DNA of 60,676 bases, counting the filler, from Platydemus manokwari (lineage: Eukaryota): NCBI GenBank assembly GCA_037951405.1. It is 5 parts of 5 records of this genome, joined end to end, with 100 filler letters (N's around TTAATTAATTAA, not from the genome) between each part and the next. Parts side by side here need not be neighbours in the genome. Positions count along the whole stretch, not along the records: positions 28,188 to 40,724 come from JBBMOY010094454.1; 4 more parts are not named here. The stretch is one strand, 5' to 3'. Position numbers and translations under genes: made by a program. This document shows positions 27,153 to 41,519 of the stretch, in pieces. A model generated the notes under the pieces. That model saw only the letters and a list, made by a program, of their open reading frames with translations. It was not told the origin of the DNA and did not search any database. How positions within the stretch are numbered: the first letter of the stretch is position 1; each line of letters opens with the position of its first letter.

Positions 27153-28446
27153 AAATAATTTGTAGTGGCTATGTGTTGTAAATCCTAAATTATCGATTTT
27201 TACTGTTTTTTACATTAAAATAATAGTTATTGATTATATTGATTTATATATTTGCATATCTTTAAAAAAATTTCTGACGGAAAGTCTGTTTAATCGCCAG
27301 TACAATGTTATTAATCTGAAATTTACGATATATGTAAGAAAATAATAATTCAATCGAATCGATATTATTCTTGCATTATTAACAACTATTACCATTTCCC
27401 TGACAATTTCGGTAGATGTTATAAATTTGACGTTTTACAGTTTTAAAAGGAATGAAATTTGTATTTCACATAGCCTTAACTGGATTAAGGAAATCCGTTT
27501 AATGTTTTTTGATGTGAATAAATAGATGGCAACGGTAACTATGTGAATGGAATTGTCACCGAGTGGATTAGATGTGATGGCAAGTATAATGGCATAATAT
27601 TTTCTATTCAATATTTGATTCGATGCCAACTGATACTTTAAGTATTTATAAGTAGCTAATATGATTTATTTTCCTTGTAAACCCACATAGGTCCGGAATC
27701 AAACATTGATTGAAATTTTTTGGTTAATTTCAGCATTATAAATGTATTTGTTTTTCAAATTGAGCTACCTACAGATTCATTTGAAATCAGGTATAAATAA
27801 AATAATACAATCCGAGTTGGATTGAATATTTAATGAGTGTTAAAACAAATTTTTGAGCCGCAAAAATATTTAATATTCCGTGATATGGCAAGAAATATAG
27901 AAAAGATCAAATGATGTCTTTTAATTGAGTTGGGTTTTTTTAAAACAATTTCATTAATAATTTGTGCCAAAGAATTTTATTGACAAAGTAATATGAGCTT
28001 TTAAAGATTTATATAATATTTTTATCCATAAATACTCTGATGAACATATTCCTAATCTGTCATCATAGATCAATGAACACTTCAACCNNNNNNNNNNNNN
28101 NNNNNNNNNNNNNNNNNNNNNNNNNNNNNNNTTAATTAATTAANNNNNNNNNNNNNNNNNNNNNNNNNNNNNNNNNNNNNNNNNNNNCGAATTAGTAATA
28201 TGCAAAATGATGATTTCTGAATTAAATACCAAATCATCGAACATATTGTTGTTCTCAAATATCAAAAGTAATTCAAAAAATATAGTGAAAGTGAGGAAAA
28301 TTGTGAAATCCTTTGTTATCGAATAAATAACCACGTAAGAAAATCAATTTTTCGTGTAAAAATAATAATAAAAATAAATAATTTATTCACCTCAGGTAAG
28401 AATTCAGCAGTTTCAAAGAAGCTGTTTCAAATGAAGAGATTGAGAA

Positions 28447-28720
28447 ATGGCTTTGGAAAATTTCTCACATACCAAAACAGTGTACGAAAAAGTTCAGGAT
28501 TTGGCAGCAAACAATACGAGACCAACAAGATCAATGAAGACTATTGCTCCTAAATTTTACAACGATTGTAGAGGAGAACCCACACCACGTGGTGATTATT
28601 TAAAACCAGGAATTTGGTTTCGCTGTGGTGAGCTTGGATATCGGAAGTTTGAATGTCCACCGCAGAATAGATGTTTAATATGCGGAAAAGAAGGACATTC
28701 GTTCAGAGAATGATATTTAG
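28447..28720 (+). mobile_element. Retroelement gag fragment with two degenerate CCHC zinc knuckles
   Basis: WFRCGELGYRKFEC and CLICGKEGHSFRE* (final Cys codon is TGA). No pol follows. Confidence 0.75.
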
Positions 28721-30610
28721 CCAGGGAGCCTTTTTATAATAGTTCGAGGAAAAAAGTACACATCCATAACAAGGAAAATGAAGCAGTTATTCAAACCCAA
28801 AGTCAAGCAAGTGATTGTGTTAGCTCACTCTCCATGGAAGAGAAAAAACTATATTCTTTTGCTTCAAATCGACACCACTTTATTCATTTGTTCCAAAGTA
28901 TCATTTAGCTTTTGGGTTTTTTGTTTTTAATAATAATTAATAGTCTTACTTGATAATAAAAATTTGTTTTTTCTTTTGTTATATATGGTTCATTATGATT
29001 TTCCAAAAATTAAAAATAATCAATCAATATATGTACTTTTAATTTCTAGATTTATTCTATCGTTTTTTTCTATATATAATATAATAATAATGATAATAAT
29101 AATGTCAGGTGAATCACGAATGCATTCATCGTGTCAAAATTTCTTTTTGCAATTATAACCCTAAGTTTCATTTTCTTTCCTTTCCATTCGATAATCACTT
29201 CTGCATACCCCAGATGACGTTCGGCATCCGTTGGAAACACTCAACTAAGCGTAATCAAGCTATCTTGAAATTTGAGCTTCAAACAAATATAACTTGTTTG
29301 TTTATTTTACCACGTTACTGATACTAATTAATATTTAATGTAATTGTTTTCGAAATACCTTTGACTATTTTAATCGAAACATTAATAATACTCAAACATT
29401 AATACTCAAATTAATTATTCTGAGATCATGGAATGATATCAGTGGTGATAAATATTAAGAAAAATATCACATAATTCTGCGAATTATGGATTTTTGTCAA
29501 AGTGTAAAGAAGGAAATGGATAATATGTAGTGATTATAATAAATTAAATAAACTAACAATAATTAAATAGAAATCATTACTTAAATAATAAATAACGAAA
29601 GCGTTCATAAGTAAATTCTAAATAAAAATGAAGAAATAGTAAAATAAAGAGTAAAAAAACAAAAAAGTGATTTGGGAAAGAATCATGAAAATTCACAGAT
29701 TATATTTTTAGCAAGCGAATAGATGGAAAATTCTCAACATTAATACACAATGGAAGTAAGCGTTCATGAATTGGTACTATAAAGTTGACAGCCACAATGT
29801 AATGTTTTATCTACAATTTTAATATTGGATTTATGGATTATTTTTGAGAGCAAATATGTTGAAGGATCTTATTAGCGAACTACCAGAATTTCTAATGACC
29901 AATAACTGCGCAGATTATAGTAAATGATTTATTTATTTTGGATTCATTTTAAAAAAATAAAAGCCTTTACGTTAACAAAGTTCTTTGATTGCTTATTAAA
30001 ATTTTATAGTTTTTTCTTAATCATTAATAATTGGGGGTTTCATATTTTAATTAAATAAATCTTCTGCATCTATTCATCGTCCGATTTCCCGGATGTTTTC
30101 AGTGACGCACTGTAGTTCTGAGTTGTACATTTTGACAAAGTTTTTTTTAATCTTTATATCTTGTTATATTTTCATATTTCTCAAATAAATTATATTCAAA
30201 CCCATTATGTGAGTTGTGATTTAACATAAGCTTAAATATTGCATATACGTTAAGTAATATCGTTGTTATTTGCTAGCTATATTGATATTTATAGGTAATC
30301 AGTCTCAGTAAAGCTATTTATCTAACTTTCTAACTTCGAGCACATTATCACCTTTAGATTTTTCAGTTATAATTTCCAACAGAGTTGTCATCAAAGAAGC
30401 TTTTTAATCCTCGTAAAGCCAGTATTTTAAAAATTATTCGCTCATATCCTCAAGCATATTTAATAGAATGAAAATTTGTAACAAGTTTTTAATAGTATTT
30501 ATTAAATACGATTTTTGTACATTGATTTCTAACCAGATTCTGGTTATATTTTTAAAATAATTTACTTTGTGTAAATTTTCTACAATTTTTTATCTGAATT
30601 TCATATAACT

Positions 30611-33315
30611 CTAAAAGTCTAATAGCATTTTCTGACTGGCAAATTTGAAATTGTTCGAACTGTTTAATGGATTATTATTCTCTTCTATTGTACTTGATTT
30701 TTCGCTTTTTTCCATGATATCACCAATGTCTGTTTTGTCGATATCCAAAGAATCTTTGGATACCTCTTCATAATCTTTTACCAAGGCTGTAATATTAAAT
30801 AAGGATTCAGTGAATTCCATTTCTTCCATACCTTCACCAACAAACCAATGAAGAAAGCTGCGTTTGGCGTATAGTAAATAAAATTTATGTGAAATCCTTT
30901 GAAATGCTTGTCCAATTGCTGAAGAATTTGTCAGCATAGCCAGATTTTTATCTGAGGGTGCTATACGGCTACTCGGAATACGAACAGGTGTACTTGCATT
31001 GACGCCAACTTTAAATCCTGTTGGGCACCATTCAACGAAATCTAATTTTTTCTCTTTTTTAATACGAGATAATGCTGCATAGACCTGATATGGTGATATT
31101 GATCCCCTGTAAAATAATGCGCAAGACATGAAACGACCAGTTCCTGGATCAATCCTAACCATTTGATTGTCTCTTTCGAAAACACTTCCTGTTAAATTAT
31201 CAACTGAGATAACTTCATGGTTGTATCTCTCAATGTTAGCTAATGGTGAAAAATTGCACAGAGGAAAGTGAATTCTTGGGTAAGGAACTAAATTGACTTG
31301 TAAAACGGATATATCACAGTTTAAGGTATTTTCAAATCTCAAAGAGGCTGTCAGAGATGATACTACTTGTGCTATCAGCCTGTTAATCAGTATGTATGAT
31401 GGAGACTGAAAATACAAATACTTTGTTGCAATATCAAAAAGAGCTTCATTATCGAAAAGCAAACTTAAGTCGGTATCTTCGATGCAAAAGTGTTCTGCTA
31501 ACACTGAGTTGTATGGTTCAACAGTGGACGTACTAACAGCAGGAGATGGATAAACTGGTATTTCTATTTTAGGTGTTTTCGGATACTCAGCTAAAGAATC
31601 GAATAGTGCTGAAGTTAATCCAGATCCAGTCCCACCTCCCAAAGATCTATAGATCATAATTCCATTCAAATGTTCACAGTCTTCAAACATTCTTCTCGAG
31701 ACTTGAGATATTTTGCTCAACAATAATTTCCCGACAGTGAAAAATCCTCTTGCAAAATTGCTGGCAGCATCCTCAATTCCTGTGACAAATCTATCGGGAT
31801 GAAATAGACATCGATAGTTTCCCAATTTAATTTCGTCTGAAATAAAATTTCAACTCTTATGATTTGAAAATAATTAAACAATAGTAATATTAAAATATTT
31901 TATCTTTCAACAAGTGTTATTATTAATTAACCCAAAAAATGTTTTTCATTTTACCTTATCTTCCATAATAACATTATTTTGCAATATAAATTTCTCATCC
32001 ATACGCTAATTCTGTGACCTATTTAGAGCAAAGAATGAATATAGGTTTTCAATCACAATAAACAGTTCCAAAATTACTCTTCATTATGTTTGGATATTAA
32101 AACTGTGATTTTCATCAAACCTTTATTGACTCTAATAATACAACTCGTAACCAAAATAACAGACACACTAAATCTCTTTACTATTTTTAACTAACAATTA
32201 ACCATTTTTGCAATGTAATTGATACTCAGAAGTTTGTATGCGTTACTTGTGTTTGACTTTTATTCGATGTTTGCCTTTCGAAATTCGAATGGGTTTCATT
32301 GATATATCATCAGCGAGGTTGGTCTGATTTTACCAAATTTAAATCATTTTTATGCTGCTTCTGATTGATGATCGTGCCTGTATGATGACTAGGTTTGTAT
32401 TTATGCAAATGTCAACACAGGTTCCAATAGGCCAAGAGTCATTATTTACATAGAAACCTCCGTACTCGGTAGTTGTAAAATAAGTTAGAAAATAGTTGTT
32501 GATTTCCTACAAGTACTAATAATTGCTCTTTTAATCAATTTAATAATTTTAAATGAAAAAGTAAAAAATATTAAACTGACACATTAATGATTTTATAATA
32601 ATAATAACACGCGGTTGATGTAGAAAAGTATTTATTAGCATGGTATCTACAATATATTTCATTTTAGATTTAAAAATACAAAAATATAAAAAAATTTGGT
32701 AAAAATATAATTTAAATGAAGAAACTTTCTTGGGAGTAATTTTATTAAATTGTTTATCTGTTCAAGGAAAAAGCTTTTCATTGAAATGAGTGTTTATTGT
32801 TATTAAATAATTAATTGTGAATATCAAGTAATTAAATATCGGAAGAGTTCCTATAAGCAATCATCATGTTTTATTCGACAAAACAAATTTAAACAATGAA
32901 TTGTAGTAATTCCGCATACATAATATAAATATTCCTTATACATGTTGGATTAATGTAATATAATAACAAAATCCAACTTTTCACAAGCCAAGCTTCATAT
33001 TTAGATTAAATAATCTTATTAAATCAAAAATTAGTCAAACCAACCTACAACTGTTGGTTCAAGGTCTATAAAAAGACTCCTTGGCGTTAACCTGCTATTA
33101 GGATTGAAACTGAAATACGATTCAATACATTCATGGTAGTTTGGATTTCCATTGTCTCGGAAACCAGATTCAGAAATTGTATGCTCAGCACAGAATAATT
33201 CCCAAACAGCAGATCCTATTTGAACTCCGGCCTGACCAATATGGAAATTTATAATTTCTTTCTAAGATTGGAATTAGTTATGCGTTATCAAAATATATTT
33301 ATATGAAATAACCAT
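30611..33315 (-). CDS. TUBA: Divergent alpha-tubulin, 481 aa, three exons
   Basis: Exons 33315-33313 (ATG), 33261-33045 (KEIINFHIGQAGVQIGSAVWELFCAEH...FIDLEPTVV) and 31836-30611. GT-AG introns of 51 and 1208 nt keep frame (1446 nt total). Motifs [49 protein letters not shown]. An intron right after the ATG is typical of alpha-tubulins. Confidence 0.96.
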
Positions 33316-36300
33316 TTCAACAACTTTCTTTAAGAATTGATTTTAATAAGAATCAGTCAATATTGAAATAATATTTATTCTTCAATATAAATTTTTTATA
33401 TGCTTAATACTCAACCATTTTGATATATTTAAAGATAGTTATTGGTCATTAGATGTTCTTATTTTCCCATTAGTTATGCTGAGTTTTTGAGCTTATGTAT
33501 TTATCCAACACTTGATTTCGAATAATATTAATCTGACTTAAAATCAAATTAACCCTCTATTAATCAGTCTAATAAGTAAATCAAAAGACAAATATTTATA
33601 TAGAATAATCCACTATTGAACTAACGACAAATACAAAATATTCAATAATTTACAACAAATCAAAAAATCAAACATAAATTAATTTAATAAATAATCAGAC
33701 AAGCACAACTTAGTTAAATTACAGATCTTCATGCAGATATTTTGAAGCAATCTAATTTACGGACGAGAGTGGAAAATTCGAATTTATTCATTTCCTAAAT
33801 ATATATAATTATATTTTAAAAAGAGTGAATTTTATAATATGAATTTTGATACTCTTCCACTATCTAATACTACCAACAATTTCGTAGACGGCTTTTACAA
33901 ATTCTTCTTGATTTAGCGGTTCGGTTTCTTAATATTCTAATCACCAAATTCAGTTTTAAGATTTTTCAGTCAAGAGTTTTGTGAACAAAAGTTCCAATCT
34001 TTCGAGCTTATTTATGCTAATTCAATAAGAGAAATTTAAAATATTTTTATTTTTAACAATTAATTTTATTTTTAATTAAAAAATTCATTCTCTTTATTTT
34101 TACTAGATTCTATAATTTTTGGATTTCTGTACATTCTAATAATCCCACTGAATTAATTTTCTTAATTCAATAATTAACTACTATAGTGATTTCTTGGAAT
34201 TATTTTATTGGGTTAGTTAAGCAACTTTAATTTTTATGGATGATTTTTTCTATTACTATTTCACACGTGCTTTAATAATTATTTTGTGATGTTTTTCAAT
34301 TTTTATTTAGTTATTAATTTCATTATTAACAAAATTATTGTCAAAAATATTATTAAATTAATACATATGCATTAGAAAGGAAGGGCTTGCGATATAAAAA
34401 AATATATAAGAAAAAAATTGTAGATAAGTAGATTAACCAAAATCAAATAATTAAATTTAACCAACATCATAGTCCTCGTTTATGTTGTTGGTTCGGAATT
34501 GTTGGTTTGATTTTTATTTTCTCGTACCGGATGGCTTTTACGGTCTAGTTCCCTCGCTTTATCATATCTTCTCAATTGCCTTCGTCGTCTAGCTCTATTT
34601 TTTCTATTCTTTCTTGGGTACTTGATGTGTCTTCTAAACAGTAATAAAATATTACAAATTATTACTTTTATTTTATAATTTGACATGCAAAAAATTATAT
34701 ATAATGTCTGCCTAAAGTTTCAAAAATTAAAGTTAAGTAAACCTTAGTTAAATGAATTTCCTTTTACATCTGCGTTTGGCAACCTATATGAAGATAAGTA
34801 GAACGACATAGATAATAGAATTATTGTGTATTTTAATATTATATCAGTCTCTTCTACTTCCTACTAGGTTTCTTATAATTCTTATCAGTCTCGATATTCG
34901 ATGCGTCACGGAAAATGATAACAATGATTTTAATCAAATTAATATTACGAATCCTACATGCACTTTGACAATTAAACAACAGAATACAATTGTTGAATAA
35001 AATATTTATTAACAATGAATAACAAATTAAATTTATTCTGACCAATACTTTTATACACTTAAACGTTGAATAATAGTCATATTATATTCAGTGAAGCTAT
35101 ATTATCAATAAAATCCTTCGCGACTATTGAAGAAATATATTTGACAAGAACAAGCTCTATAGATGCGGGGAATAAACGGTATATATTAGAGATGTTTTTT
35201 ATAAGTACAGTATCTTAATGTTGGATCTTCCAGTAGAATATTGGGTATGTAATATTCTAATGGGCATCTTTGAGTCATTCATAATTTTTATACGATTATC
35301 AAATAATGCCTTACACACATATATGTGTCTATGAATTTATTGTGGCAGAAAAATATTCTCTGCAATAAATTTATTATATAGAAAAATATTATGTTATTAA
35401 AATTATTATTGCTAGAATTCATTAAAAGCGATAACTAGGAATTTAACAAGCAATTTATCAGAATATTGATTTAATGGATAGGTTTATTATATGGTAAATT
35501 AAATAGGTTTTATTAATTAATATAAATGCTTGGTTTATTTTAGATTTAATTTATATTTTATTTTATTAACCGCCAGGCTTCTAGAATTTATTCAGAAATA
35601 CCCAATATTATTAATCTTGCAAAAATACATTTTTACACCTAATGGTATTTTTATGCATTGATACACAAATCGATACACAACTATTGTCAGATTGTAATTT
35701 AAAATTGTTAATTGCCCCAAACTCCAAAAAATTAGTTACCTTCTTATATTTGTAAATTAAAATGTTTTTGTATGAAATCAAACTAATTATTTTAGAAGAA
35801 TTTTGACTTAAAAGTATAATTTAAATTAAAAATTCTAACAAATCATAAAATAGGCTTCCAATTTTATAAGGTAGTGAACCCAATTCCAATAAGAAGCATT
35901 TGGTGCAACCGGAGATAAAAATAATTTTGATTAAAGTTGAGCAGTGTCCTCAATAGATATTCTCTGAACCCATTTTCAGATGAAGATAAGTAATTGAAAA
36001 TTAATTCATTAGAAGTGTATCCTTTCAAGAACATCCTTTCTGCAGTAAACACATTTCATTTCATATTCAAAACTTCTTTTAATATTTAAACGTTTTCATT
36101 AGACAGCGCATTTACTGACTTTGGCTTAAGTCACACCGTCATTTATTTTTGAGCTTAAAGAAGGTAAATAGATAGCTAGACACTAATAATAGATTTATAT
36201 CAATGAATCTTAATGGGTCAAATGCCTATGGTATGGTAAAGTAAAGATTTGTTGATTAACTAACTCTTAATAGTTCAGCTAGTTATAATGTAAATGTTTT

Positions 36301-36786
36301 CAAATACTGAATTTTTAAAAATATGTTGAAATAAATTTAGAATCTAGTGTACATCTGATCTTTAAGTTAGCCTCATATTTTAACATACACGTACAATTAG
36401 TCTTGAGAATGATGAACACACAATAAAAACCACTTTCATCAAAATACAGTTGTATAACGTGAAAGTAAAATTAGAAACTTGATATTGTCAGGTGCTTGAA
36501 TTAGAATTAAAAATATACAATGAAAAATTAATTTATAATAATATAAATAAATTACACATTAATTAAAATACAAAAAAAATTTATTGGCACTTATTATAGC
36601 AAAAATAAAGAACATTAAACCATGTCTAACATATGCATGACACATCATTACAGACATTAAATTGCACCAATAGTTTCTGACCAATTCACAAAAACGGAAA
36701 AATTAAAAATCCAAGACTGTATTTATTAAAACAAACTTATTTACACTGATTAAATATTTTATTGTTCAAACAAATATTATGATTTG

Positions 36787-37005
36787 TCAACCACTGTCCA
36801 GAGTGTTCACAAAGCGTGTCACCACGCTGAATCGTTTCTTGGAATATTTTTTTTCCTACAAAAAAATTGAAACAAAATATTCTTACAACATAAATCGCTT
36901 AAAAATCTACTATTTTCTCAGCAACAGACTGCAATATTTTACAAATATCATTTTCCGATTGTGATCGTTTTCTTACAAATGGTTTTGGAACTTTCAACAA
37001 TTCCA
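36787..37005 (-). CDS. Two putative terminal exons of a small basic protein of unknown family
   Basis: Exon 37005-36911 (ELLKVPKPFVRKRSQSENDICKILQSVAEKI), 55-nt GT-AG intron, exon 36855-36787 (EKKYSKKRFSVVTRFVNTLDSG*), and AATAAA about 25 nt downstream. A possible further exon lies near 37305-37340. Confidence 0.4.
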
Positions 37006-38967
37006 CTAAGAGAAATCGATAATATTAACGAGAAAAATTTATGAAGTTAAATTATGAATGCAAATATTTAGGAAAAATACAACGAACCTATTAAAGTTTG
37101 ATATTTGTTTACATAAAAAATCGATATGAAAAATCCTAAAAATGCATATTTTTATATACTTAGAAATTTCGATTGTTTCAACGGGAATCATACATATTAA
37201 TCATATAGTATTTGTGCATTTATATTAATATTTAGCATAAAAACATAAAAAGTAGGTTGATAATTTCTACTTTGATGTGTTTAAGTGAACTGATTATCTT
37301 ATACGACGAGATTCCTTCTTAGAAACATTGGAGAACTTTCTAGCTTGAATTTATAAAGGGTAAATGTTTTTGTAATTACATTATTTCGGTTAAAATGGAA
37401 CTCATCTTTTATCCAAAGTGACAAAAAATTAATGAATAATTTCGGAATAACACGAAAAAAGAATATATCGATCCGAATTTTAAATTTCCTGCTCTTATAT
37501 TTTCACTTATTTTACACAAATTTACACACTATCATTATATGGTAACAAGCGATTACGATTGAAACATATATGATTAGAGCTGTTTTTTTACACAATTAAC
37601 TGCCGTCGTTTCTCAGTATTTGAAATTTTGTATCAATGCTTTAGTCAATTCTATCCAATGCATTCACTGTGTCGATGAATTTTCATTTGACAGAAATTTC
37701 TTGAAGAAAACTTTAAAAAGTTATTATTTTATGCTATTTAATTGAAAACCGTTTTACAAGACATGATAATGATTTTTTTTATGATGGATTTCTAACATGT
37801 TTGAATTTTAAGAAAATATTTTCTTATCAAAACAACAATAATTATCAAATTATTTTATTATAAATATTATTTGAGATTGATTTTAATAATTTATGGTATA
37901 TTTTAGCTCTTCTGGTTAGGCGGATTAAATTGTAAAAAACATGTTAAAGAAATTAAGATCTAAAATTAAATCGATGGTTCAGCTAATCTGAATATTTGCG
38001 TAATCCGTAGACAGTTTAAAGTCTCGTTGATACATTTCATCGAAATAAACAAGTATTAGTAATTCAATAAATCAATTCTTGTAAACTGATTAAAATAATC
38101 AATGATAAAGGAAATTTCTGTCCAAATTATTAAATCACAGCACATGTATTCGCTTAATAAGGATCAACATAAATTAGGTTTATGCTACAATAATTTTATC
38201 ATTGAAGTACACTGGTCAAGCTATTGATTATTAAAACAAGTAGCTACTCGATAGACTTAATTACCCATTAGTAGTTTATAGGAAATCGAATTTACCAGAT
38301 TATAATTTGCTCAACAATTGATTCAAACTCATGAGGATTTCAATCAGCATAATTATTAATTATTACTGATCATATAGTTATTGCATTTTGGATCCATATC
38401 ACCATATCTCACACCTATAAAATTAAATCCTGTCAAATACTAATATGAACTTAAAAATATTAAATATTTTTTTTTGTAAAATTCATAACAAAAATGAAAT
38501 CAAAAGGATTGTTGCTGTGGAAAATTATAAATATTTTCTTAATCAAAATCGTGAAATACATTAAGCCAGCCGAAAAAATCAATACTGTATTCTTAAATAA
38601 AACAATGCATCTATTAAATTAAACCATTTAGATCGAGTAAAACATTGCATAAAAATTTAAGGCAATTATAGATATAAGTAACAAATTATCATTAAAAATA
38701 ATCTTATCTTGCATTATTTTTATTCCTTTAATATTACGGAAACAGAATAATAAATATTCAACCATTACATCTTATACTATATTTTATTATTATCAACAAT
38801 AATATCATAGTAATAACCAAATCAACAAAATATAATAAATAGCTTAAAATCATTATAAATAAATTCGAAAAATAGCGGATTAATAATTATCAAACCTAAT
38901 TTAATAAATTGAAAATTATGTTAACCATAGAAAATTGCAAATGTTCAAATAAAGAAAACAACACTTA

Positions 38968-39952
38968 CAAGATTTCCGTTGTGTATTCATTGAGAAATAA
39001 TTGTTTATTGTGCGGTTTCCAAATCATATGCTAATCAGTGTTGTCTCAACTATGTCACATGCAGATTTGTTGGCTTGATTATTAATGTTGAAAGTAGTTT
39101 AATAAAATACTCGCAACATTCATTTGACCTAATTCAAAAAATCTATGCTAAACCAAATAAATAAACAAAGTGGCTAACGATTATAGTTCTTATTTATCTA
39201 AACTGTGCAAGATAATTTTTCTGAATCCACTTATTCATTAACCGGAAAACTAAAGAATAAATTTCACATTCAAGTGATGCTCTAGAGATATTTTTAAAAA
39301 TTTTCCTTGAACTGAAATTCCAATACTATTCTGGAAGCGATTTTAAATTCAAAGTTAAATTACTTATTATTAATCTTATTCGTGAGTCATGTGCTGCTTA
39401 GTAATTTACTATTTTACTGATTGAGTGTGATATTTTATTAATTGAATTAGTATTTTTTAATATTTTTAGGTTTTAAAAAACCATAGAAACAGTTGAAAAA
39501 ATTTAAGATTTTAAATTTGATCCACTCATAATCTAATAACTTAGCTAATAAAAATGAAACTGATTTGTAAAATTCCGAATTTCTGTTTCCAAGCTGAATA
39601 TAATAAAGGAAGAAATCTATGGCACTCTTGTTTTGAATTATGAAAGTGTAAAGATGTAAAGATGTGTCAGAAGGTTTTTGAATCTTTAAATTATCTGGCC
39701 AGGTAAGGTTGTAGCTACGATTTAACTCGGATATTGTGAAATAATATTTAGCATACATATGCTAATTATAATATAAATTTGATTAATTGAGATAATTTAC
39801 AAAACTAATAGATAGTGTATAATTCTATTGTAAAACCCAGTAACATCAAGATAAAAGTATAAGGGGGCTGCCTAGGTGCTGGGACAAGTCTATCTTGATT
39901 GATTCGCTTATAAGATTTTTAAAGATCACAAGGTTAGAACTAGGTGTGAGCC
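38968..39952 (-). pseudogene. Multi-exon gene or pseudogene of unknown family
   Basis: Open exon-like blocks 39952-39809 (LTPSSNLVIFKNLISESIKIDLSQHLGSPLYFYLDVTGFYNR) and 39764-~39485 (ORF 39447-39758) can be joined by a 44-nt GT-AG intron. Downstream blocks contain stops. Confidence 0.35.
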
Positions 39953-41519
39953 TGCAGTTAATTATTACGACAGTAATGAAAAATTTACTCATTTACATAA
40001 AATATTTTCAGAAATAAATTTCACAATGTAAATTGATAAATAAATAATAAATTTATACAAATAAATGTATTTCAAAATGTTCGTGCTTGAAAGCTTATTC
40101 AAAATTTCTATGATTCATTAATAAATTTAACAGCACTCATATTCCACTCAACTATTAGTGGACAGGTAAATTGTTTTTACTCCTAAGAAAATTTTTATTT
40201 TATCGATATATAAATATAGCTTATTAACGTCATCGTTATAAATGATAAATTCTAGGTTGATTGCTTTTCTCATTTATATATTCACTAGGAAAGCGGATGG
40301 ACCGAGGCAAGAATTCAATTAGACGATGAAAGAAATTGGAATAGTTTAGTATACATATAATTACCCATTATCGTAATTACTTATAGCAATTATTATTAAC
40401 CTAATTGCATGTCTCAAATTTCTCATATTACAGAAGAATTTATGAAATTTTACAATACATAAATAAATACTCAAACATTAAATTTCAAATAAGTGTTAAA
40501 ATATTATTAAAAAATATTAATCACAATATAAATGAATACGATTACATTACACCAGCATTAAGTTTATATCAAACATAAAAAATTGGTGAAAATCAAATTA
40601 ATGATGATCAATTATTAGAAACAATCAATAATTTTCCTCAGAAATTTAAATAAAAAACGCAAAATTAGAAAATCCAAAAAACATTTGAACATGGAACATT
40701 TAAATATCACTTCGGATAATATTCNNNNNNNNNNNNNNNNNNNNNNNNNNNNNNNNNNNNNNNNNNNNTTAATTAATTAANNNNNNNNNNNNNNNNNNNN
40801 NNNNNNNNNNNNNNNNNNNNNNNNTATTCTTCACATTCATCAAACAGATTTCTCAAATATTATATTTTTAAAATTCATATCGAATATTAGAGATCATAAA
40901 AATTTCTCATAGTTTTCGCTTTGTTCGATTTGAATAATAACGGCAATATATTGATTTGCTATGTCAAATACAGTGATTTCATATTGATTAATAATAAATT
41001 GAGAATAAAGGCTGTAATTGATAAATTTGAAAACAATAATTAAATATTTATAATAAATTTCAGCAATTTAGAAATTATTGTGTGTATTATAATTATAATA
41101 ATATATAATTAAATCAATAATGTTCTTATAATCAATTATTGTGCATGAGATATCAGTTTCAAGGTCATTTTTAATTTGCTTAAACAAAAGTAATAATTAT
41201 TTTATTCCATGCAATATCCATTGTTTTATTTAGGCTACAAATCGTTAAACTATTTGGTCATCACCATTTTATTGTTTAAAATATTCGTTGCGATAAATCC
41301 ATTTCTAATTTATTAAATAAAATTTTATTTATTTTTTTAATTTTTTGTAACATTAACTCTTTTGAATTTCGACTTGAATAAATTTGTCGTACAAATTGTT
41401 ATAAATAACTCGTTATTAATAATGGACAATAGGGTGTTAATACACTGATCTCTGCTTCACTTAGTCGATATTATATTTATGTATGTTTGTTTAAAAAATG
41501 TTGAGTTTAAATTCTAAAA

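Follow-up and report, generated by a model that had tools for sequence, protein, structure and literature searches.

A flatworm alpha-tubulin with valine at the Glu254 position and its place in a conserved clade without the catalytic glutamate

Glu254 of alpha-tubulin, on which dynamic instability rests, is treated as an invariant residue, and laboratories mutate it to obtain microtubules locked in the guanosine triphosphate (GTP) state. Here we analyse a stretch of 60,676 nucleotides, filler included, from the flatworm Platydemus manokwari (NCBI GenBank assembly GCA_037951405.1), consisting of 5 parts of 5 records joined end to end and called the window below. Its piece at positions 28188-40724 (JBBMOY010094454.1; G+C content 26%) contains a single recognisable gene; it lies on the minus strand, is of alpha-tubulin type and encodes valine at the Glu254 position. 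The encoded protein belongs to a conserved natural clade of alpha-tubulins, probably phylum-wide, that lacks the catalytic glutamate.

The closest experimental systems are engineered. In the microtubule lattice, Glu254 of alpha-tubulin makes the GTPase site of the underlying beta-tubulin complete (Nogales et al. 1998, cited in PMC7018511). Polymers of human E254A tubulin retain their GTP, form by strong nucleation and remain stable all day; with E254D, hydrolysis is slower and catastrophes almost disappear, and in yeast the equivalent change is lethal (PMC7018511). The earlier note on this DNA had described E254A lattices as hydrolysis-deficient and hyperstable. With the E254A and E254D forms of TUBA1B and the equivalent change in yeast tub1, the window gene shares the loss of the carboxylate at 254 (PMC7018511) and a predicted GTP-state lattice, strong nucleation and stability (PMC7018511; PMC11893814). 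Unlike those single-residue laboratory changes, lethal in yeast, the window protein would represent a natural isotype found across a phylum and carrying many co-evolved changes.

A natural parallel has been described in apicomplexans. Bioinformatic analysis found Toxoplasma gondii alpha3-tubulin and its coccidian homologues to be without the canonical GTPase-activating residues and to have an unusually long C-terminal tail, and alpha3 was proposed to be a polymer stabiliser (PMC10056924). In alpha3, D251 is replaced by T and E254 by Q or H, a Glu lies one position earlier and the N-terminus is MPREI (PMC10056924), whereas the window protein, compared with alpha3 by its description only, keeps D251, has no nearby acid and begins M-KEII. 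A common origin of Toxoplasma alpha3 and the flatworm clade seems unlikely. At the equivalent T7/H8 position, beta-tubulin carries a non-acidic residue, Lys254, and the GTP bound to alpha-tubulin is consequently never hydrolysed; the role of this residue of beta-tubulin is said to go back to Nogales et al. in 1998. The flatworm clade would apply the same logic at the other interface, the window protein differing from beta-tubulin in being alpha-type by sequence and S9-S10 loop. Finally, D915_006002 of Fasciola and other flatworm entries named 'Tubulin alpha chain' are sister-group orthologues of the window protein, with Val in the motif DLNVIQTN and the clade-fixed substitutions in common; they differ from it in their identity of only ~57-60%, and most neodermatan tails are far shorter than the 50 residues of the window's.

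The critical residue lies in the following two elements of the gene:

31265-31339, minus strand: T7 loop and helix H8, with N249 and D251 kept
31304-31306, minus strand: GTT codon, Val251 of the model, corresponding to canonical Glu254

In a phmmer comparison with alpha-tubulins of the PDB (E ~1e-126), the window's 'ncdisvlqvn' pairs without gaps with 'nvdltefqtn', which preserves N249 and D251 and puts Val in the place of E254. The earlier note had read this Val from a T7/H8 peptide that our minus-strand translation reproduces exactly. Of the GTPase-activating pair D251/E254, the window thus has the first member and Val for the second, and the surrounding D-I-S-V-L-Q contains no Asp or Glu at or next to position 254. 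The Val codon, GTT at 31306-31304, is two changes away from GAA or GAG, from which the earlier note had argued that a miscall is unlikely. A read-derived Logan contig of 2677 nt covers positions 30823-33499 with zero differences from the window. The contig comes from the sole public run with this DNA, possibly the assembly's own sample; it excludes an assembly slip and is not an independent individual. Given the agreement with raw reads, the need for two base changes and the Val or other non-acidic residue in all relatives, a sequencing or assembly error at GTT has a practically negligible probability and the idea was rejected. All relatives being non-acidic at the site, E254V is a family trait, and a miscall or chance event is ruled out.

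The relatives were searched in a collection of 5.8 billion proteins. The closest form two sets: sequences from Logan, ENA and MetaClust, 58-68% identical to the window protein, and flatworm proteins annotated only 'Tubulin alpha chain', 52-60% identical to it. The latter come from cestodes (Echinococcus, Taenia, Hydatigera, Hymenolepis, Rodentolepis, Schistocephalus, Spirometra, Sparganum and Dibothriocephalus), trematodes (Fasciola, Fasciolopsis, Echinostoma, Paragonimus, Clonorchis, Opisthorchis and Calicophoron) and the monogenean Protopolystoma, and all species-named members of the clade are Platyhelminthes from these three groups. The 254 column holds Glu in none of the 25 clade members placed in the tree and in none of 32 further members of the tubulin cluster; most have Val, a few Ala or Ile, and one diphyllobothriid paralogue and two deep members have Thr. 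No clade member has Asp or Glu anywhere at positions 252-256. Some 100 canonical alpha-tubulins of animals, fungi, plants and protists from the same match list all read D-x-x-E-F-Q-T-N.

In a maximum-likelihood tree (LG+C20, 49 rows, without a beta or gamma outgroup), the proteins lacking Glu, the window protein among them, form one clade whose support is 100/100 and whose stem measures 1.5 changes per site. This clade is nested among animal alpha-tubulins and its sister (93/91) is the sole canonical flatworm alpha-tubulin in the tree. The neodermatan part mirrors the species tree, separating cestodes from the monogenean and trematodes; the window protein and seven sequences of the first set (99/91) are sister to the neodermatan group, the two together being supported at 95/89, and three deeper subfamilies lie outside them. 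The window protein also falls in a subgroup supported at 99/96, and its position would suit a flatworm outside the Neodermata. In this clade the state without Glu is ancestral, and acidity at 254 has not returned in any member. Since three paralogues occur in the sample SRR33002330 and two in ERZ3792534, the family has probably diversified in some, probably free-living, species. For two members of the clade, P0006 and P0037, the whole reading frame lies uninterrupted by introns on a contig of 1.6-2.0 kb; these contigs are probably transcripts.

A profile search with the clade alignment produced no new members, its matches being dominated by tandem-fused tubulin gene models and by canonical alpha-tubulins whose scores equal those of clade members. 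A search with the deep member P0066, in which the 8000 candidates with most shared words were scored, returned among the best 120 matches listed three relatives and then the flatworm clade only; no named Schistosoma, Macrostomum or non-flatworm member was among the matches listed, by which their absence is not shown. A few details of the paralogues may be recorded here. Those of SRR33002330 (L001, L003 and L006) differ widely in their third-position G+C, at 0.64, 0.40 and 0.37, and either codon usage may differ greatly among the paralogues or the sample may contain more than one organism; the pair from ERZ3792534 is L004 and L005. The diphyllobothriid paralogue with Thr254 (P0055 and P0231-P0234, from Schistocephalus, Spirometra and Sparganum) has the tubulin signature altered to SGGTG by G142S, and in Sparganum two paralogues sit on one contig.

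By its domains, signature, nearest relatives and loop lengths, the window protein is an alpha-tubulin. Both Pfam tubulin domains score above their curated cut-offs (PF00091 at 6.8e-29, PF03953 at 1.2e-35), the best 60 PDB matches are all alpha chains, and residues 355-375 align without gaps, giving the S9-S10 loop its alpha-type length. The elements relevant to nucleotide binding and to the protein's exterior are

33226-33237, minus strand: GQAG, structural GTP site, in exon 2
33055-33066, minus strand: DLEP, structural GTP site, in exon 2
31619-31639, minus strand: tubulin signature GGGTGSG, residues 140-146
30764-30826, minus strand: helix H12, a clade-specific surface, EEMEFTESLFNITALVKDYEE
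30614-30763, minus strand: C-terminal tail of 50 residues, ending ...LLDF

Like canonical alpha-tubulin (TUBA1A/1B; PDB 3J8X, 1JFF), the window protein has the two domains, GGGTGSG, D251, the loop length mentioned and the polymerisation loops. At the structural GTP pocket, or N-site, it keeps G10, Q11, G13, Q15, D69, E71, D98, N102, GGGTG, E183, N206 and N228, and has Y224 as well; the sole change is N101 to Ser, found also in the nearest relatives. The polymerisation loops, the EK..HE pattern of the M-loop and the H11'-H12 stretch are conserved in the clade.

The likeness does not extend much further, and E254V is far from being the only departure from the canonical protein. The window protein is only ~49% identical to the canonical one and carries all of the ~17 replacements that the clade has fixed at positions invariant in canonical alpha-tubulins: Y103F, H107F, Y108F, F149L, L152A, T191E, H197D, L227I, G246N, E254V, T382S, E386Q, D396Y, M398L, R422L, D424N and E429V. 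N249 is relaxed within the clade. Helix H12, with the clade consensus EExEFxEALxNIxxLVKDYEE, has lost three acidic residues and one basic residue from the outer surface that faces motors and microtubule-associated proteins (MAPs), the window lacking R422, E423, D424 and E429. There is no Lys in the window's H1-S2 loop, and the clade as a whole is without K40. The window's tail of 50 residues is of mixed charge, with 10 acidic and 6 basic residues, and ends in LLDF without the acidic -EEY, an ending absent from all clade tails. Neodermatan tails are non-acidic and 5-16 residues long in most species, with 44 in Echinococcus, and those of the non-neodermatan members are long and of mixed charge. 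In P0061, P0064, P0253, P0009 and P0024, the C-terminus runs on for 180-240 residues after DYEE, much longer than any canonical tubulin tail, and P0061 and P0064 share the conserved ending ...SLMESLIRLTS.

Taken as a whole, this pattern suggests a protein that folds, binds structural GTP and polymerises, lacks the residue that triggers hydrolysis, and presents a different exterior. We consider it likely, though well short of certain, that the gene is a functional, ancient and selectively maintained flatworm isotype, probably unable to promote hydrolysis, that serves stable microtubules of sperm. In the proposed scenario, the ancestor of the clade would have exchanged the catalytic Glu254 for a non-acidic residue, which is Val in most members today. 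As the N-site residues and the longitudinal and lateral contact loops are kept, the protein should pair with beta-tubulin and polymerise. The T7/H8 face with Val would then fail to activate GTP hydrolysis on the beta-tubulin beneath, and, by analogy with E254A and E254D, the interfaces between dimers would be held in the GTP state, making microtubules that nucleate easily and are intrinsically stable and non-dynamic. With its altered H12 surface and neither K40 nor the acidic -EEY, the polymer may stand outside the usual code of motors, MAPs and modifications. The testis enrichment of the liver-fluke orthologue, described below, points to spermiogenesis as the site of use, with the bundled cortical microtubules and the 9+'1' axonemes of flatworm sperm as candidate structures.

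The same differences at the surface can be read in another way, namely that the protein acts outside the lattice, sequestering beta-tubulin, capping ends or building a non-microtubule structure such as a part of the 9+'1' central core. The long stem branch, the fixed changes that affect T3/H3, H4, H5, H11' and H12 besides T7/H8, the relaxed N249, and an outer H12 surface and tail very unlike any canonical alpha-tubulin would all suit such a role; a protein that does not polymerise is, however, not expected to retain the M-loop pattern EK..HE and the N-site residues as they are in polymerising alpha-tubulins, and we find this explanation unlikely. Quite unlikely, too, is that hydrolysis is retained, with some other residue or the partner beta-tubulin compensating for the loss and the protein being a divergent, tissue-specific isotype of normal dynamics. 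D251 is indeed kept in the window and in 20 of the 21 relatives scored, and the loss of hydrolysis in the clade is argued by analogy. On the other hand, no member has an acidic residue at 252-256, the clade takes Val, Ala, Thr and Ile at 254 and never Asp or Glu, and in human tubulin even the conservative E254D slows hydrolysis and E254A abolishes it (PMC7018511). A maintained isotype that forms stable, hydrolysis-free microtubules remains the reading that we prefer.

Maintenance is also what the substitution patterns suggest. A pair of close clade members gives 0.117 nonsynonymous (dN) and 1.30 synonymous (dS) changes per site and an omega of ~0.09, this being the only relative pair with a usable dN/dS; for the window, comparison with the nearest relative gives a dN of 0.27, and dS has reached saturation with all relatives at hand. 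Only 6 of 129 near-invariant sites are altered in the window, most of them by conservative changes (F52Y, V62T, R79K, Q133N, T257V and K304R), and the number is within the range of other clade members. One might still suppose that the window copy is a paralogue in decay or one that has lately lost constraint, in a family that is functional as a whole: its end branch is the longest in its four-member subgroup (0.83, against 0.31 for P0005), and its own changes include T257V beside the catalytic position. Yet the model translation gives three exons and 481 codons without a stop codon or frameshift, in A+T-rich DNA of 26% G+C where stop codons are frequent, which makes decay unlikely, and both introns are GT..AG; with the near-invariant sites mostly kept as in other members, we regard decay as very improbable and a pseudogene as rejected. 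The description of the gene in the earlier note as otherwise open, with proper splice sites, was accurate.

For the functional side of the maintained isotype, evidence comes from expression in the liver fluke. The Fasciola hepatica orthologue is THD23391.1 (UniProt A0A4E0RB94, D915_006002), and in a spatial transcriptome of the adult fluke it figures among the testis markers (row 228; area under the curve 0.916, log2 fold change 1.52), 98.9% of the spots in the testis being positive for it (PMC11484910 Supplementary Data 2). The authors of that study discuss alpha-tubulins 1-5 and the testis tubulin D915_001685, and not D915_006002 (PMC11484910). Digenean sperm contain cortical microtubule bundles and 9+'1' axonemes (PMC4230190). 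Together with the purifying selection on an ancestral clade without Glu, the testis marker lends partial support to the earlier suggestion of a natural hydrolysis-dead isotype for specialised microtubules such as those of sperm or cilia. The published testis-specific 'tubulin alpha' of F. hepatica, D915_001685, was considered as the orthologue and rejected, its accession being A0A4E0S3J4 and not A0A4E0RB94. That gene is the top F. hepatica testis marker and falls outside the described alpha1-5 set (PMC11484910).

Several points weigh against a stable sperm isotype. The loss of the GTPase is predicted from E254A/E254D mutagenesis (PMC7018511), and dimerisation and polymerisation are predicted from sequence. 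Stable microtubules are usually K40-acetylated and glutamylated, marks that the window protein cannot carry. The long end branch of the window could reflect some relaxed constraint, the sole such hint in our analyses. Exon 1 is deduced from homology, and a search for public RNA runs holding the window sequence found none. In the fluke, 54% of the spots outside the testis were positive for D915_006002 too (PMC11484910 Supplementary Data 2). The fluke's testis pattern may not hold for the window copy, as free-living relatives carry several paralogues.

A bolder version of the sperm hypothesis, which we hold as tentative and rather doubtful, is that a hydrolysis-dead family arose early in the phylum and, with testis beta-tubulins, builds cortical microtubules of sperm that are permanently in the GTP state and 'silent' to motors and modifications, paralogous subfamilies being present in free-living species. 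If true, E254A microtubules would have a counterpart in nature at the scale of a whole organism. More generally, an animal alpha-tubulin clade without Glu254 that has been under purifying selection since before the split of tapeworms, flukes and monogeneans would be a natural experiment on the use of a GTP-state lattice in vivo, on the surfaces that must co-evolve with it (H12, the tail and the K40 loop) and on the cellular control of a strongly nucleating tubulin. The clade is already present in databases under the uninformative name 'Tubulin alpha chain', and a full-text literature search, with subscription journals mostly outside its reach, found no paper on the flatworm clade or its missing Glu. 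As the named members are so far from flatworms only and differ from host alpha-tubulin at many invariant sites, the family is a possible marker of, or entry point into, male fertility of parasites.

The gene model behind these analyses was assembled around an open reading frame (ORF) of 404 codons at 30611-31825 on the minus strand, which matches alpha-tubulin from residue ~75 to the end. The missing N-terminus was located upstream, at 33261-33045 on the same strand, and reads KEIINFHIGQAGVQIG...DLEPTVV. Its parts are

33416-33418, minus strand: putative exon 1, consisting of the ATG only and followed by GT (ATG, then gttgagt), placed by homology
33313-33315, minus strand: alternative exon 1, again ATG followed by gt
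33263-33262, minus strand: acceptor AG of exon 2
33045-33261, minus strand: exon 2, residues 2-73 and the first base of codon 74, KEIINFHIGQAG...DLEPTVV
33044-33043, minus strand: donor GT of exon 2
31837-33044, minus strand: intron 2, 1208 nt, phase 1, GT..AG
30611-31836, minus strand: exon 3, residues 74-481 and the stop codon, from the ORF and the Pfam and PDB matches
30498-30503, minus strand: AATAAA, candidate polyadenylation signal ~110 nt past the stop codon, by sequence match only

Exon 2 is immediately preceded by an in-frame TAG, so that the start codon has to be supplied from another exon by splicing, and two sites of the form ATG-GT were found upstream of that exon. In many alpha-tubulin genes the first exon ends with the ATG, as it does in our model, and the N-terminus of the relatives, M-R/K-E/D-I/V, is comparable to the M-KEII of the window; it is from such homology that we infer exon 1 and the splicing of the gene. 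Joined, exons 2 and 3 read ...EPTVV-DEIKLGNYR..., against the canonical ...EPTVIDEVRTG, and exon 3 encodes the larger part of the GTPase domain together with the intermediate domain, C-terminal helices and tail. The phase-1 intron at 31837-33044, lying in the codon after EPTVV, is apparently common to the relatives from SRR33002330, whose genomic ORFs start at the point of intron 2 (in P0007, ...FFL precedes the point and DDIRTG follows it).

The other ORFs of the piece at 28188-40724 had no Pfam match, and no notable tandem repeats were seen in it. An ORF of 88 amino acids at 28447-28713, on the plus strand, contains two CCHC-like zinc-knuckle motifs (...RCGELGYRKFECP...CLICGKEGHSFRE) and looks like a remnant of a retroelement gag; at E <= 0.01, Pfam gave no hit for it. 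Several further contigs of run X1 agree exactly with the window over ~30 bases at 30821-30850 and 31008-31036, stretches that encode the conserved GEGMEE and WCPTGFK, and then diverge. With these partial matches, the source genome probably has further tubulin paralogues.

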